From positions 62,001 through 126,000 of the forward strand of contig NIVC01000384.1 of the NCBI GenBank assembly GCA_002269645.1: a stretch of DNA of 64,000 nucleotides, written 5' to 3'. Positions within the stretch are counted from its first letter, which is position 1; every line of letters begins with the position of its first letter. The translations under genes were made by a program, and so were the position numbers. The notes below the pieces were generated by a model. That model saw only the letters and a list, made by a program, of their open reading frames with translations. It did not search any database and was not told where the DNA came from. Origin of the DNA: Macrostomum lignano (Eukaryota). Below, piece after piece: positions 5,239-12,714 of the stretch.

Positions 5239-8200
5239 ATGAAGATACACGCTGCGTCCCTGACTGTCGTCATTGCTGTCGTCTGCCTGTGGCAGCCTGT
5301 GTCTGCCACCACCAGCTTCTGGAACAGCCAGTACTCAACTGCCGAGTTCGCTCAGTTCCGCTACAAGAACCAGTTTATGTTGTCGATCTTCCAGCATCTG
5401 ACTAAGAACAACACGTTCTACATCACGCCTCTGGTACTGCTCGACCACCGGTCCGGCAGTCTGATGCACAATCCGTTTACCGAGTACTGGGAGCTTCGTT
5501 TCAGCGTCATCATGTGGGACATGGAGTTGCAAGGTGAGTTTGAGCGGCTTTGTCGTTGTTTGACTTTCAGTTATCAGTAACAAGGACGCCAGCATCAAAG
5601 GCAAGAATGAAAGGCAAGAACTAATGACTCTGAATTAGTCGAATTTTCAGGTATCAGCTCATGCCTACAAACCAGGAGTTCAAACGTTACTCTTCCATTT
5701 TTCAGCCAGCGTCTACAACTTCCTGACCACCGTCAAAGGCGTCCGCAACCCGGACGTGAAGCTGCTCCCTATGGAACGCGTCCGCTTCCAGTGGCAGTCG
5801 CGCAGCCGGCCCATCGTGAAAAAGCTCGTGATGGAAACCGAGTTCATCGCCACGCACCATCTGCCTCGGCTTCTCACTCTGACGTTCGCCTGCAAGAACC
5901 AGTCGCAGTGCGCCATGCTCAAAGACAAGGTCAGAGAGGATCCGGAGTCGCTCGACAGTTTAAAGCTGGACTGCTTCCTGACTGCGCAGAAGACGGCTAG
6001 TAAGACTGTGCGAGTCACCACTGACAACCTGATGCAGTCTACAACGTTCTCGAAGCTGCTAATGCTGCCTAAGGATGGAAATTACAGGTGAGGATAGCGC
6101 TTGATTTACATCTCAAAAAGGGGCTCTCTGCTAGCAAATGAGTCGCCGATCGCATAAGGTCCAAAAGACTCTTGTAGCGCGACTTGTGTCCTATTCGAGG
6201 TGTGACCAAATTAGTTAGGGATGATTTATTAGAACATTATAACATATACCATACTATGTAAATGTAAGTGCCTCACTATTAGAAAATTAAAGTGCAGAAG
6301 TGGAATGTCAGCACTGTATCATTGTCAGTTCCTTGTCTTTGGTCCTGCAAGGTACATGCGAGCCGACGACTTCAACAACCTGGTTCAAGAGACCTACTCG
6401 TCGGTTCGGGCCACAACTATTCGATCCACCGAATACGTTGAAAAGTACGATGAGCTAAACATTGTACGCTTGATCGAGAGCGCGCTGAAGCAGGACGAGG
6501 TCATCACCAGCACTCTCAGCCAAACGCAGTGGCAGAGCGTCTTCTGGGATCCGACATTCGCTCGACCAGACAAAGTCGTAAGAGAGGCAGCCAAAACCTT
6601 CAAAAAAGAGGACTCTACAGGACAACTTCGGGTCGATAGGGCGTACCTGAGAAGCAACGAGGAGGCCAGGAAACTGTTTGGCTCAAGCAGGTCCCTCAGT
6701 GGCTCGGTTGGGGGCTCCTGGAGAGGTTTGGGCAGCGGTTCAATCAGCGGAGAGAGCTCCCGTAGGGCCGGTGACTCCATCAGCGGCAGCCTGTCGCACT
6801 TGAACGACCGCTACACAATGGACGAGCTCAACCGGAAGCTGTCTGACGCTAATCTGAACGTCGAATGGAACGGTGAACGGTTTATTGTGAGCCCGATGCG
6901 TCTGGTTCGAATCAACGAGCAGGCCTACCGGTCCCGAAGGGAGCTGATCAGCAACAACATGCAGCTGACCATCTACCAGCAGAGCGCTTCGTTGAGCGTA
7001 ATTGTTAGGCAGGAGCACAACGAGACCGCCATGATGAGGGAGACCGCCGCGACAGTGGGTGAGTTGGACGATGGGTTGGATATTTAACTACAATTTTAAT
7101 AGCTATAATTAGGAAGTACCTGTAGCTACCTGTATCGTATCAGGTATCATATCATATCGATCATAACGATTATCATATCAACATTAAGCATTGTAGACCC
7201 GAAGTTTCAATTGAAGCTTAAATTTCCTGACCTTTACATAGAATTGCTAGGCTCAGTTTCAAACCAATTGATTAATACTGCCATATTCCAATTAGTCAGC
7301 ACCAATTTTCAACCTGTTTTAGAACCCGTTACTGCGGTACATCATATGTACTCGTACCTTAAAAATTCGAATCTTAGACTTTGTCATAAACCCTTAATTG
7401 CTCTTGATATCGCAGCTGTTATAAGACTTCCGTGACAGTTAATATACGAGTAATGGTGTGGTTATACGCTCGTAAACTTCCAAAAACGATACCAGCTCAT
7501 TAGGCACCAGAATGGAGCTTAAATCAAGGAGCACAGTAATGTTTTATAGACACTCATAAAACGTAAGGCTTATGATTTCATGGTTCGGAGAAAAGTACCG
7601 AGTGGCTATAGATATAGGAATTTTTTTAAAAGATTTGTTGCTAAGCTGTCATCGGGGAATCGCTGAAATGATGTGGCTCATCGGGGGGGGGTTGTTTGCT
7701 CAGATACCAAAGGGCAATTTGGATTTGTTGATAGGCCTTACGTCAAAAGGATAGTCATGGTTCAGTCACGTCTTAAAGGGAGGCCATGATGCCAAAGCTC
7801 ACAGTAGAGGAGTGCTGATATCTTAGGCTATAGACAGTTTGCTTCATGTCTGTTTTGATTTAAGCATCGAATATTTTTTAAGAGGGACTGTACAAGGTCA
7901 AAAGCTACATTAAGTTTAATCTATTTTTTTATTCCTTTCTTTGTTGCCTCCGCCAACAAGTCCTGTCAGGTCTAGAAGTCCTTGACCCGAAGTTAAGCTC
8001 CAGCTAGACCAAGTTTAGCTTCCTTGAACTCTCAGGAGATGGCTTTCACTGGTCGGACAATTTATTTATTTCAATCGTTTAGTTTAAGTCAGCATCAGAT
8101 TTATTTGATATCCTGAGTAATTAGCAGTTCTCGTTAATCTCGTTAAACAATAAAGTTGGACTCTGAGCTTAGTTAATCATCATGAATTATCATAATTGCA

Positions 8201-8482
8201 TAAAATCTGCACTAAACGCATTCCCTCAACGCAGGCGCTTTCCCCACCGAGTACAGCTACTGCCTGTTGTCGAACGGCGGCAGCTGTCCTCCGGGCTTCA
8301 CCCGCAGCTCCGGCTTCATGAAGTCCATCAGGCTGGACACCAGCAGCAGCGGCATGATCAGCAAGGCCAAGCTGGGCGACTCGGCCATCAAGTGCCATAG
8401 TCCCGGAGACTCGGACGACTGCTCGTTCAGAGGCTGGGAGCCGTTCAAGGGCGAGCTGCATCTGCACGTTTGCTGCCGTTGA
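5239..8482 (+). CDS. Secreted protein A (about 543 aa): uncharacterised N-terminal domain plus ApeC/apextrin-like Cys-rich C-terminal module
   Basis: Exons 5239-5533, 5706-6087, 6352-7058 and 8235-8482. All introns are GT-AG with compatible phases, and the 1632 nt total is open. Signal peptide MKIHAASLTVVIAVVCLWQPVSA. The C-terminus YCLLSNGGSCPPGF...LHVCCR resembles the last part of ApeC domains. The paralogue at 9992-12714 has the same intron positions. Confidence 0.85.
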
Positions 8483-9991: not shown

Positions 9992-12714
9992 ATGGCAAAG
10001 CACTTGGCAAGTTCAGTCGCTTTGATTTTGTCAGCTGCCATCTGCCTGTGGCAGCCGGCGAACTGCGTCAGCTTCTGGGACAGTCAGTACTCGACTAGTG
10101 AGTTCGCTCAGTTCCGCTACAAGAATCAGTTTACCGTGTCCATCTTCCAGCACCTTACCAAGAACAGGACATTCTATATCACGCCTCTGGTGCTGCTGGA
10201 TCACACATCCGGCTCGCTGACTTACAATGACTTCACAGAGTTCTGGGAACTCCGCTTCGACGTCATCATGTGGGATAGCGAGATGCAGAGTAAGAAAAAT
10301 GCTTTCCATAATATAAAATAAGACCCTTTTAAATATTTTAAAGATTTAAAGGGATTTTTGGACACGTTTGCAGCAAAATAGTACACGTATGTGAATTCGC
10401 GGCCTTGTGAATTCAGTGGTGTATAAGTAGCTGTGTGATTGAGTCTGCCGGGATCCTGAAAACTACACTGACTGAGGGCTTAAAAAACCAAGAACTAACC
10501 TCATCGAACATCCTGTACCAATTGCCACCCCTCGCGAACATTGCAGCCAGCGTCGTCGACTTTCTAACCCGGGTGAAAAAGGTCGCCAGACCGGATGTGC
10601 GGCTGCTGCCTCTGGAGAAGGTCCGCTTCCAATGGCAATCTCGCAACCGACCCTTGAAGAAGAACATCATCTTGGAGAACGAGTTCTTGGCCACCAATCA
10701 CCTATGGGATCCGTTGAAACTAATTTTTGCTTGCAAAAACGAGACTTACTGCGCCAGACTGCTGACGAAAGTCAGAAACAACCCGAGGTCTCTCGACAGC
10801 CTCGTTCTGGACTGCTTCTTGACCGCACAGAAATCTGTTAGCAAAACTGTGACAGTCACTACTGACAATCTCATGGAGACAACTGCCTTTTCGAAGCTGA
10901 TGGTGCTGCCTCCTGATGGAAATTACAGGTTATTATGTCACGTGTAGTCATATTGTATGTAATTAAAGATGCCAGGTCCTGAATTAACAATGACTGTTAT
11001 TTCTCATTGATCAAACAGTGGCACTCAAAACCGGAGTTGTGTAGGCCTCTATTGATTAGTAGAACTAAATGTATCAACGCCATCGAAGCTAATTGAGTAC
11101 AAAACTTCCTAACGCAGGTATATGCGAGCCGACGACTTCAACAACCTGGTGCAAGAGACCTACTCGTCGGTTCGGGCCACCACAATCCGGTCGACTGAAT
11201 ACGTTGAAAAGAAAGACGAATTCGACATCATGCGTCTCATCGAGGGCGCTTTGAAGCAAGACGAAATCTACGCCAACAGACTAAGCGAGACCAAGTGGCG
11301 CAGCGTCTTCTGGGACCCGGTGTACGCACGTCCGGATCGCGTTGTGCACGAAGCCTCAAGAACCTTTAAAAAGGACGAGTCCACGGGTTTAATGAAGGTC
11401 GACAGGGATTACCTGAGAAGCAGCGACGAGGCTAAGAAACTATTCGGTAGCACTTCGAGCACCAGCTGGTCAGCTGGCGGTTCCGCTTTCCTTTTTTCTG
11501 CCAAAGTTGGCTCGCGCAGGACAGTGACTGACAGGGGCTCGGAGAGTTCCAGACGGTCTTATCAGCGAGACTCTTTCACAAGCGAGGAGCTCAACAATAA
11601 GCTATCCGAACGCAACCTGAATGTCCAGTGGAATGGCGAGCGATTCGAAGTGCGCCCACTGCGGCTGGTTCGAATCAACGAGCAGTCGTTCCGCTCCCGG
11701 CGAGAGCTGGTCAGCAACAACATGCAGCTTACAATCTACCAGCAGACTACCACGTTCAAAGTGATCACTGTACCGGAGCGAAACAGCAGCTTGTTGCTTA
11801 GGGATCTCGCCAGCGCTGGTAAGCAATTAGTACTCCCCGATTGCTACACGTCAGTATTTTATTTAGTTGAACTAAAACACGATGGAAATAATTGATTTAC
11901 ATTCGATGATTTTTCTCAAGGTTTACCTGGTTTACCATATGAAAGCATGCACTTATAACAAATTATTTCTAGTCAAGCAGCAGCATCACGAGACATGGCA
12001 TCGGAGGACTTAAATCCCATTTAGCCTTAGTACAGCTCAGTACTCCCATTGAGACATAGCACTCAGTAAATGTAATTACGCTTTTTAAAGTTATAAATGT
12101 CAACGAGCCTTTAGTAGTCAGAATCCATCTCAGCTAGCAAACGCAGCCCACTACAACAGCTCCAAGGTTTTAAATGTCATGGGAAAAGGAAAACAAAGAA
12201 CTAAAACGATAAAGTTAGCTTTCAGCCCCAAAAGTGCTTCGATTAGGTTCCCTGATCGTAACCAAATACTATTGAAGACGAATCCCAATTGATTGTTAAT
12301 CTATAGCTGCCCCCGAAGTAAGTTCTTCCAGGCGGTCCTTGAACGCAAAATTGTAAGATGGAATGTATGCAGGTACTAAATTCTATCTCAAGCCATTCCT
12401 TTCATAAAACTATTCTATCTGAATCTGCGAAATAAATACAACAATGTATGTATGCATACGCTCCAGGAGAATTCCCCAGCAAGTACAGCTACTGCCTGCT
12501 GTCGAACGGCGGCAGCTGTCCTCCAGGATTCACCCGCAGCTCCGGCTTCATGAAGTCCATCAGGCTGGACACCAGCAGCAGCGGCATGATCAGCAAGGCC
12601 AAGCTGGGCGACTCGGCCATCAAGTGCCATAGTCCCGGAGACTCGGACGACTGCTCGTTCAGAGGCTGGGAGCCGTTCAAGGGCGAGCTGCATCTGCACG
12701 TTTGCTGCCGTTGA
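9992..12714 (+). CDS. Secreted protein B (about 542 aa), tandem paralogue of protein A
   Basis: Exons 9992-10289, 10547-10928, 11118-11818 and 12467-12714, with GT-AG introns at the same positions and phases as gene A (1629 nt open). Signal peptide MAKHLASSVALILSAAICLWQPANC. Confidence 0.85.

Follow-up and report, generated by a model that had tools for sequence, protein, structure and literature searches.

The stretch of DNA analysed here, hereafter the window, comprises 64,000 nucleotides (nt) of the flatworm Macrostomum lignano (assembly GCA_002269645.1, contig NIVC01000384.1, positions 62,001 to 126,000, forward strand). It contains two complete genes on the + strand, called A and B in the following, whose reading frames are spliced at canonical GT-AG sites. 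Each gene encodes a signal peptide, a large N-terminal region (the N-domain) and a short cysteine-rich C-terminal tail. The N-domain belongs to a family which has neither a name nor a Pfam model, a solved relative or a recognisable fold. No described relative of any kind was found for this family; the A and B sequences themselves are already deposited as 'hypothetical proteins'.

All introns of A and B follow the GT-AG rule, and intron positions and phases match between the two genes (Table 1). Protein A is identical (100%, full length) to the NCBI entry 'hypothetical protein BOX15_Mlig026829g5 [Macrostomum lignano]', and a few residues separate protein B from BOX15_Mlig026829g2. The Mlig_3_7 gene models rest on RNA-seq data, from which StringTie/TACO assembled them in genome-guided mode (PMC5730564). 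Since the BOX15_Mlig026829 models come from this RNA-seq assembly, the junction between exons 3 and 4 is transcript-supported. Under the naming rule of these models (PMC5730564), the shared prefix Mlig026829 is a hint of a single transcriptional unit for A and B. An earlier, sequence-only reading of this DNA had described two intact four-exon paralogues with signal peptides and a separate last exon for the cysteine-rich module, and had made its case depend on transcripts joining exon 3 to exon 4. The open frames, the GT-AG introns and the match to the NCBI models agree with this description, exon 4 encodes exactly the 82-residue tail, and the junction is present in the RNA-seq-based models.

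The mature proteins have a mass of ~59 kDa and an isoelectric point (pI) of ~9. In each protein the N-domain contains three cysteines and the tail six, and three sequons for N-glycosylation are shared by the two. Every conserved block which the sequence-only reading had listed was found in A as well as in B, namely FYITPLVLLDH, ELRF.VIMWD, LLP(M/L)E(R/K)V, SVFWDP..ARPD(K/R), V.WNGERF...P(M/L)RLVRIN and YCLLSNGGSCPPGF...VCCR.

Table 1. Features of the gene pair and of its spacer in the window (aa, amino acids; UTR, untranslated region)
Feature	Position	Strand	Remarks
Gene A	5239-8482	+	four exons, intact frame, 543 aa
Gene A exon 1	5239..5533	+	start codon, signal peptide, start of N-domain; GT donor at 5534
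Gene A signal peptide	aa 1-23, nt 5239-5307	+	MKIHAASLTVVIAVVCLWQPVSA
Gene A exon 2	5706..6087	+	N-domain including the conserved CX5C pair (C161, C167)
Gene A exon 3	6352..7058	+	N-domain core including the WNGERF...RLVRIN block
W286-x4-W291-x5-R297-P298-D299 motif, gene A exon 3	nt 6530-6574	+	
Gly/Ser-rich disordered loop, gene A exon 3	aa 337-375, nt 6683-6799	+	
Gene A exon 4	8235..8482	+	82-aa six-cysteine tail, stop codon
Gene-conversion tract, gene A	8240..8506	+	exon 4 plus ~25 nt of 3' UTR; ~97% identity to the tract of B
Gene B	9992-12714	+	four exons, intact frame, 542 aa
Gene B exon 1	9992..10289	+	start codon, signal peptide MAKHLASSVALILSAAICLWQPANC, start of N-domain
Gene B exon 2	10547..10928	+	N-domain
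Gene B exon 3	11118..11818	+	N-domain core, Gly/Ser loop, WNGERF block
Gene B exon 4	12467..12714	+	82-aa six-cysteine tail, stop codon
Gene-conversion tract, gene B	12472..12738	+	counterpart of A 8240-8506
Second A/B identity stretch	6071-6087 + 6352-6440 vs 10912-10928 + 11118-11206	+	identical 30-aa block YMRADDFNNLVQETYSSVRATTIRSTEYVEK
21-bp tandem array, A-B spacer	9034..9394	.	17 copies, unit TTTTAGCGCCGCAGGCACTCA

With protein A as query, an exhaustive phmmer search over 1.84 billion cluster representatives (50% clustering) returned 351 relatives at E<=1e-3, 156 at E<=1e-10 and 14 at E<=1e-30, and all matches run through residues ~20-455 of A. The named members are all labelled 'uncharacterized' or 'hypothetical'. 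They include a third paralogue of Macrostomum lignano (P0004, with a WSC domain) and proteins of the acoel Convolutriloba macropyga, the tardigrades Paramacrobiotus metropolitanus and Hypsibius exemplaris, the nematode Plectus sambesii, the cladoceran Daphnia pulicaria and the bdelloid rotifers Rotaria socialis and Didymodactylos carnosus. Metagenome or transcriptome contigs contribute many more members. Relatives in Daphnia and bdelloid rotifers, some of them fused to C1q, had been named in the sequence-only reading and were recovered by the search. As that reading had also stated, the N-terminal region has no family that can be named: in spite of 351 relatives no Pfam-A model covers it, and the N-domains of A and B have no match in PADLOC or NCBIfam either. 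No Pfam family is common to the 48 + 32 relatives which were scanned. A sequence search of the Protein Data Bank (PDB) with protein A alone gave only oleate hydratase at E 0.75, which we treat as no match. In a word-indexed protein search, an alignment of 48 family sequences returned only three M. lignano proteins and an alignment of the tails returned nothing. When IMG/VR was scanned with a degenerate DNA motif, two matches appeared, both of them chance matches without protein similarity.

Conservation was derived from an alignment of 150 members of the family, which averages only ~20-25% identity. Six positions are near-invariant and present in both A and B (D232, W286, W291, R297, P298 and D299), which indicates a functional site. 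Also strongly conserved are N306, G400, F403, K406, N414 and a CX5C pair (C161/C167), which is present in A and B and whose second cysteine is kept in 124 of the 150 sequences. Protein A departs from the family consensus at two of these columns, with A306 in place of N and S406 in place of K. The conserved residues fall in two blocks, W-x-S-V-F-W-x5-R-P-D-K and W-x-G-E-K-F-x-P-K-P-x2-L-x-R-x-N, which are separated by a variable loop. No internal repeats were detected when the N-domain was compared with itself by hhalign. In both A and B we find similarity over the full domain, the near-invariant residues and a variable Gly/Ser-rich loop between the motif blocks, which places the pair within the family.

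The modules which follow the N-domain differ between relatives. Phage-tail-collar domains (up to 2e-18), an Xlink domain (2.6e-11), a C1q head in a protein of Daphnia pulicaria (P0035, 4.3e-18) and in one more member, and the WSC domain of the Macrostomum paralogue P0004 (5.7e-29) were detected, and in other relatives an SRCR domain or a short Cys tail takes this position. Frequently, a coiled coil of the apolipoprotein-like type is placed between the N-domain and its partner. The domain combinations support an undescribed modular family, as the sequence-only reading had proposed. Three proteins of Paramacrobiotus metropolitanus (P0029, P0038 and P0130; 970-1050 residues) carry a P-loop GTPase of the AIG1/septin/MMR_HSR1 type directly after the N-domain. 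These fusions have no signal peptide and a long helical C-terminus, their GTPase matches mostly lie below the Pfam cut-offs, and they appear to form a cytosolic branch. A signal-like N-terminus was assigned to 56 of 109 full-length members by a crude test of hydrophobicity. Judged from these architectures, the N-domain appears as the constant part, the head which follows it varies, and extracellular and cytosolic versions both seem to exist. Several tardigrade members are located on a contig of identical size (470,536 bp), which suggests that they are clustered on one contig, as is typical for defence gene families.

Two known groups of proteins come close to parts of this pattern. C1q-domain-containing (C1qDC) proteins resemble those family members which end in a true C1q head, and many members of the family have a coiled-coil stalk between N-domain and head, whereas A and B have neither C1q nor a long coiled coil; a literature search for C1qDC architectures found none which contains the 430-residue N-domain. 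In the three tardigrade members the N-domain takes the position before the GTPase where GIMAP/AIG1-type immune GTPases usually carry their effector. In contrast, A and B are secreted and lack a GTPase, and the tardigrade GTPase matches are mostly below gathering scores.

An AlphaFold2 model of A, computed from the 48-sequence alignment, has a mean predicted local distance difference test (pLDDT) score of 75.8, with values >90 over most of residues 30-335 and 380-445. It shows a mixed α+β domain of ~430 residues in which two strands (184-203 and 423-441) are very long. The pLDDT is <50 in residues 337-375 and in the tail. Comparison of the full model with 350,542 PDB chains by Foldseek gave nothing at E<=0.001 (best E 0.29; template modelling (TM) score normalised to the query, TMq, <=0.1). 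The top matches are noise and consist of ACT-like and ferredoxin-like fragments, ribosomal proteins and T-cell receptors. As far as the tools used can see, the modelled N-domain is a fold without a solved relative. The sequence-only reading would have been at odds with a confident match to a characterised non-lytic family, and none was obtained in the Pfam, PDB sequence and Foldseek searches. Among predicted viral structures (BFVD), Foldseek found a sole significant neighbour, the uncharacterised protein A0A7S7YF07 of Medusavirus stheno T3 (417 residues; E 1.2e-12, probability 1.00), with 14% identity over 484 alignment columns and a poor global superposition (TM 0.26-0.33). This protein is like the N-domain in fold and unlike it in origin, as it comes from a giant virus of amoebae and not from an animal. 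The match prompts the question whether the family has relatives in amoebae or viruses and whether horizontal transfer has occurred.

The tail is less easily placed. A pattern of 45-95 residues, W-x3-(S/N)-(Y/F/L)-C-x3-10-C-P-x-G-F ... C-C-(K/R), was found in thirteen representatives; one match of the regular expression (P0079) is a false positive within an N-domain, and P0009 has a variant form. Beyond the window pair, the short tail is present in about ten representatives, an acoel protein among them. Four cysteines are invariant across the tails of the relatives, and the Macrostomum tails have one extra pair (six in total). The sequence-only reading had called the module 'ApeC-like'. ApeC is defined by a length of about 200 residues, eight cysteines and three DXED motifs (PMC9585378). 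The A/B tail has 82 residues which lie wholly in exon 4, it has six cysteines, and no D.ED occurs anywhere in A or B; this last feature is the weakest of the criteria, since the characterised ApeC-containing protein (ACP) BgACP1 also lacks DXED motifs (PMC9585378). The tails of A and B do not match the Pfam model PF16977 even at E<=10. Those of the relatives touch only positions ~55-95 of its 208, with a best score of 23.0 bits against a gathering threshold of 26.5. A model of the tail alone has a mean pLDDT of 58.8, with values of ~80-85 attained only at the conserved edges, which form three strands; Foldseek gave nothing but noise for this model, and the tail profile found no match among PDB sequences. 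Of the ApeC assignment, the short motif stands, and length, cysteine count, DXED motifs and PF16977 score speak against it. The tail has a motif in common with ApeC, of which it could be a strongly reduced form, and it fails all the membership criteria applied here. Like the ACPs and apextrins (PF16977; amphioxus ACP1/2, oyster CgACP1), A and B are secreted and end in a Cys-rich module with CC(K/R). Near its start this module has a motif of the W-P-x-G-x-Y-C...G-x-C-P-x-G-F type, which in the relatives of A and B aligns with ApeC profile positions ~55-95. Apextrin (MACPF plus ApeC) also joins an N-terminal module to a C-terminal recognition module. However, the partner of the A/B tail is not MACPF, and the tail is shorter, has fewer cysteines and lacks DXED.

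The two genes have aged unevenly. Over exons 1-3, synonymous sites are saturated (synonymous divergence, dS, 1.22), the ratio of nonsynonymous to synonymous divergence (dN/dS) is 0.23, and the N-domains share ~65% amino-acid identity. A and B are thus old tandem paralogues under purifying selection. Exon 4, in contrast, has 96.8% DNA identity and a dS of 0.09. The tract of identity begins a few bases within exon 4 and stops ~25 nt past the stop codon. Its edges are abrupt, and no A/B similarity is left in the flanking intron and in the remaining 3' UTR. Exon 4 is the GC-richest part of either gene (0.61-0.63 vs 0.51-0.56). A second, shorter peak of A/B identity (92-95%) lies at the exon 2/3 junction (positions 661-750 of the coding sequence) and reflects either strong constraint on this segment or a small tract of conversion.

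The entire locus occurs a second time in the genome, on contig NIVC01002313.1 (L001 in the following, 22.7 kb), which was compared with positions 1-22000 of the window. Gene order is the same (Noggin-like gene, A, B, P450) and both genes are intact. Identity is 95-96% overall (flanks ~95%) and 98-100% in the coding exons. The duplication is in line with the redundancy which has been described for the assembly of the neopolyploid M. lignano. Exon 4 of B in the window has 3 mismatches to exon 4 of A in L001 and 6 to exon 4 of B in L001. Because exon 4 is near-identical between the paralogues, the flanks have diverged and exon 4 of B is nearer to that of A in the other copy, the pattern is the signature of repeated gene conversion restricted to the tail exon, which keeps this exon alike in the old paralogues. 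Such an exon-limited process, with the tail alone kept near-identical, is a clean small case of module-level concerted evolution.

Our leading reading, held tentatively and with a little less than even confidence, is that A and B are extracellular recognition/effector proteins of an undescribed family, which would most likely serve in defence. It builds on the gene structure, the secretion signal, the family membership, the domain combinations, the lack of a known fold, the purifying selection and the conversion tract, and it is drawn from the fact that the constant N-domain nearly always precedes a known ligand-recognition head. A and B are secreted, N-glycosylated, basic proteins of ~59 kDa composed of two modules. 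The 82-residue tail, on its own exon, would form a C-terminal knot with three disulfides and may bind a surface ligand, for example a microbial glycan or a cell-wall component. The N-domain would supply the constant effector activity. Gene conversion holds both paralogues to the same tail, and so probably to the same target, while their N-domains have diverged. The N-domain could then act on a target membrane or surface through its Gly/Ser loop with a hydrophobic patch, possibly after cleavage at an ESSRR sequence. This last step is a weak guess, to be doubted even by a reader who accepts the effector role. Gly and Ser are strongly enriched in the loop (Gly 12.9% vs 2.7% elsewhere), and 48 of 76 family loops have a hydrophobic-Gly-hydrophobic patch, compared with 14.6 +/- 3.2 in shuffles. 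Within the otherwise unalignable loop, A and B have an ESSRR island in common (residues 361-365 of A), which in the trimmed alignment is also present in P0004 and could be a processing site. Family-wide, dibasic sites occur in 14 of 76 loops compared with an expected 10.5 +/- 2.2, which is no significant excess.

Several observations weigh against the recognition/effector reading. Literature searches for the N-domain family found no paper. Likewise, expression of Mlig026829 and Mlig008808 was not found in the supplements of M. lignano papers. The family is not uniformly extracellular, as about half of the full-length relatives have no obvious signal peptide. Ligand binding by the tail is suggested only by a sub-threshold, motif-level resemblance to ApeC, and the AlphaFold2 model of the tail is poor. 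In the family at large the N-domain is constant and the head varies; A and B show the opposite, with a constant tail and diverging N-domains. Finally, the pattern of the hydrophobic-Gly-hydrophobic patch was chosen after the loops had been viewed, and its strict form is absent from A and B.

The sequence-only reading had favored a pore-forming toxin, possibly acting as an A/B pair, in which the N-domain would oligomerise on a membrane recognised by the tail and insert a β-hairpin from the Gly/Ser loop. A constant large domain with a swappable head parallels apextrin, perforin, natterin/Dln1 and CEL-III. More broadly, lectin-headed β-pore-forming toxins (natterin/Dln1, CEL-III, biomphalysin) and MACPF proteins (perforin, pleurotolysin B) share with the family a constant domain with interchangeable recognition domains, secretion and lineage-specific gene-family expansion. 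The very long strands of the model, the small hydrophobic patch in a flexible loop at a conserved position and the cytosolic GTPase-fused versions, which would fit a membrane-attack effector, also agree with pore formation. Both paralogues have an odd cysteine (C188/C189) at a position which is F or Y in most relatives, and it could link a disulfide-bonded dimer. This cysteine and the shared prefix Mlig026829 are the only leads towards an A/B pair. However, the N-domain has no fold, profile or motif similarity to these proteins. For the MACPF/CDC fold, with its bent central sheet and two helical clusters, Foldseek gave no PDB entry of any weight and no match at all at E<0.001, the MACPF signature (Y/W)-G-(T/S)-H-(F/Y)-x6-G-G is absent from A and B as a regular expression, and PF01823 gave no Pfam match. 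Aerolysin/ETX-MTX2, leukocidin, lysenin, actinoporin and gasdermin structures gave no Foldseek match to the N-domain model, nor was a Pfam match to gasdermin seen in A, B or the scanned relatives. A hint of Pleurotolysin B, obtained when a 48-sequence profile was compared with the PDB (E~2), was gone with the deeper 150-sequence profile and is therefore noise. An amphipathic insertion hairpin was not detected in the loop at 337-375, which is predicted to be disordered and whose best hydrophobic moment at period 2 (β) equals that of shuffled sequences (2.195 vs 2.17, 76 members). The hydrophobic-Gly-hydrophobic patch of the loop is enriched in the family and too short for a transmembrane hairpin. 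As the presence of such a hairpin in the predicted structure had been set as a criterion beforehand, the toxin reading is weakened. Furthermore, the set of polar residues kept nearly invariant here (D, R, D, N, K, N) is unusual in a β-pore former, and the identical architectures of A and B contain nothing that marks distinct A and B components. Taken together, we consider a pore-forming toxin improbable.

The same polar residues speak for an enzyme, such as a glycosidase, a lipase or another hydrolase acting on microbial or extracellular substrates to which the head would bring the N-domain. A few near-invariant polar and aromatic residues (D232, W286, W291, R297-P298-D299, N306, K406 and N414) persist despite ~20-25% identity and resemble an active or binding site more than a structural core, and the combination of a catalytic domain with a carbohydrate-binding module is common. 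We nevertheless regard this option as quite unlikely, since neither the sequence nor the fold of the N-domain resembles that of any enzyme family, and fusion to GTPases or to coiled coils with trimeric heads (C1q, Collar) is uncommon for hydrolases. A somewhat better, still rather unlikely, alternative is a secreted protein outside immunity with a structural or reproductive role (in mucus, extracellular matrix, eggshell, rhabdites, adhesive or seminal fluid), where the N-domain would be a scaffold or polymerisation module and the Cys tail would provide cross-links. Such a role would suit a secreted, basic (pI ~9), glycosylated protein with a Cys-rich C-terminus and one unpaired cysteine in the N-domain. 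Xlink, WSC and SRCR are also found in matrix proteins, and Macrostomum is reported to have many lineage-specific secretory gland products (PMC5977470, PMC6410801). The UniProt label 'VWFD domain-containing' would point in this direction as well, but it sits on a frameshifted model of gene A (P0002), and a VWD identity of A was ruled out, as PF00094 has no match at E<=1 and no VWD structure is among the Foldseek matches. In addition, C1q and phage-tail-collar heads are mainly recognition modules, and the cytosolic GTPase-fused members do not fit a matrix scaffold.

Beyond the recognition/effector reading, one may speculate, with little expectation of being right, that the N-domain is a new class of membrane-attacking or cytotoxic effector unlike MACPF, aerolysin and gasdermin. 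It would be aimed by varying heads outside cells and coupled to GIMAP-like GTPases inside them, a relative would have been captured by a giant virus, and the Macrostomum paralogues would perhaps act together through their shared tail. If so, its users would be small aquatic and limno-terrestrial invertebrates (rotifers, tardigrades, cladocerans, Plectus, acoels and macrostomids), with heads which include a mini-ApeC. A domain of ~430 residues which occurs in hundreds of sequence clusters and at least six animal phyla and has neither a name nor a known fold is uncommon today. With immune recognition heads and immune-type GTPases as partners, it is a candidate for a missing effector class of invertebrate innate immunity, a subject little studied in rotifers, tardigrades, flatworms and acoels. 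Since transgenesis and RNA interference exist for Macrostomum lignano, its function is directly testable.

The gene pair is flanked by other genes and by repeats. Just upstream of gene A, an open reading frame (ORF) of 272 residues on the - strand (3305-4123) contains a Noggin domain (PF05806, 8.7e-07, above the gathering score), and its L001 counterpart lies at 3431-4246. Downstream of gene B, an apparently intronless cytochrome P450 gene encodes 499 residues (19055-20554, + strand; PF00067, 5.4e-100; 20289-21809 in L001). Between B and the P450 gene, L001 has an extra called gene of 829 residues (16697-19186, - strand). The 21-bp array of the A-B spacer is also present in L001 with its copies shifted in register. 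In the window it is followed by opposed poly-G and poly-C runs at 9440-9530, possibly a transposon remnant. Further downstream lie a (GACA)55 microsatellite (14872-15093), an array of 12.5 copies of a 33-bp unit (15555-15967) and a (TGTC)n tract (16496-17182); long 'ORFs' called in 14872-17182 are repeat artefacts. The distal 40 kb (24800-63400) consist nearly entirely of minisatellite arrays with units of 11-46 bp, together with (TCTG)n and (CT)n tracts, and these repeats explain why the composition profile is so strongly skewed in GC and AT. Examples are the arrays at 24824-26497 (30 bp x 56), 32348-34240 (23 bp x 82) and 35778-38033 (23 bp x 99), and an array at 41166-43974 (22 bp x 127) has a telomere-like unit which contains AACCCT.

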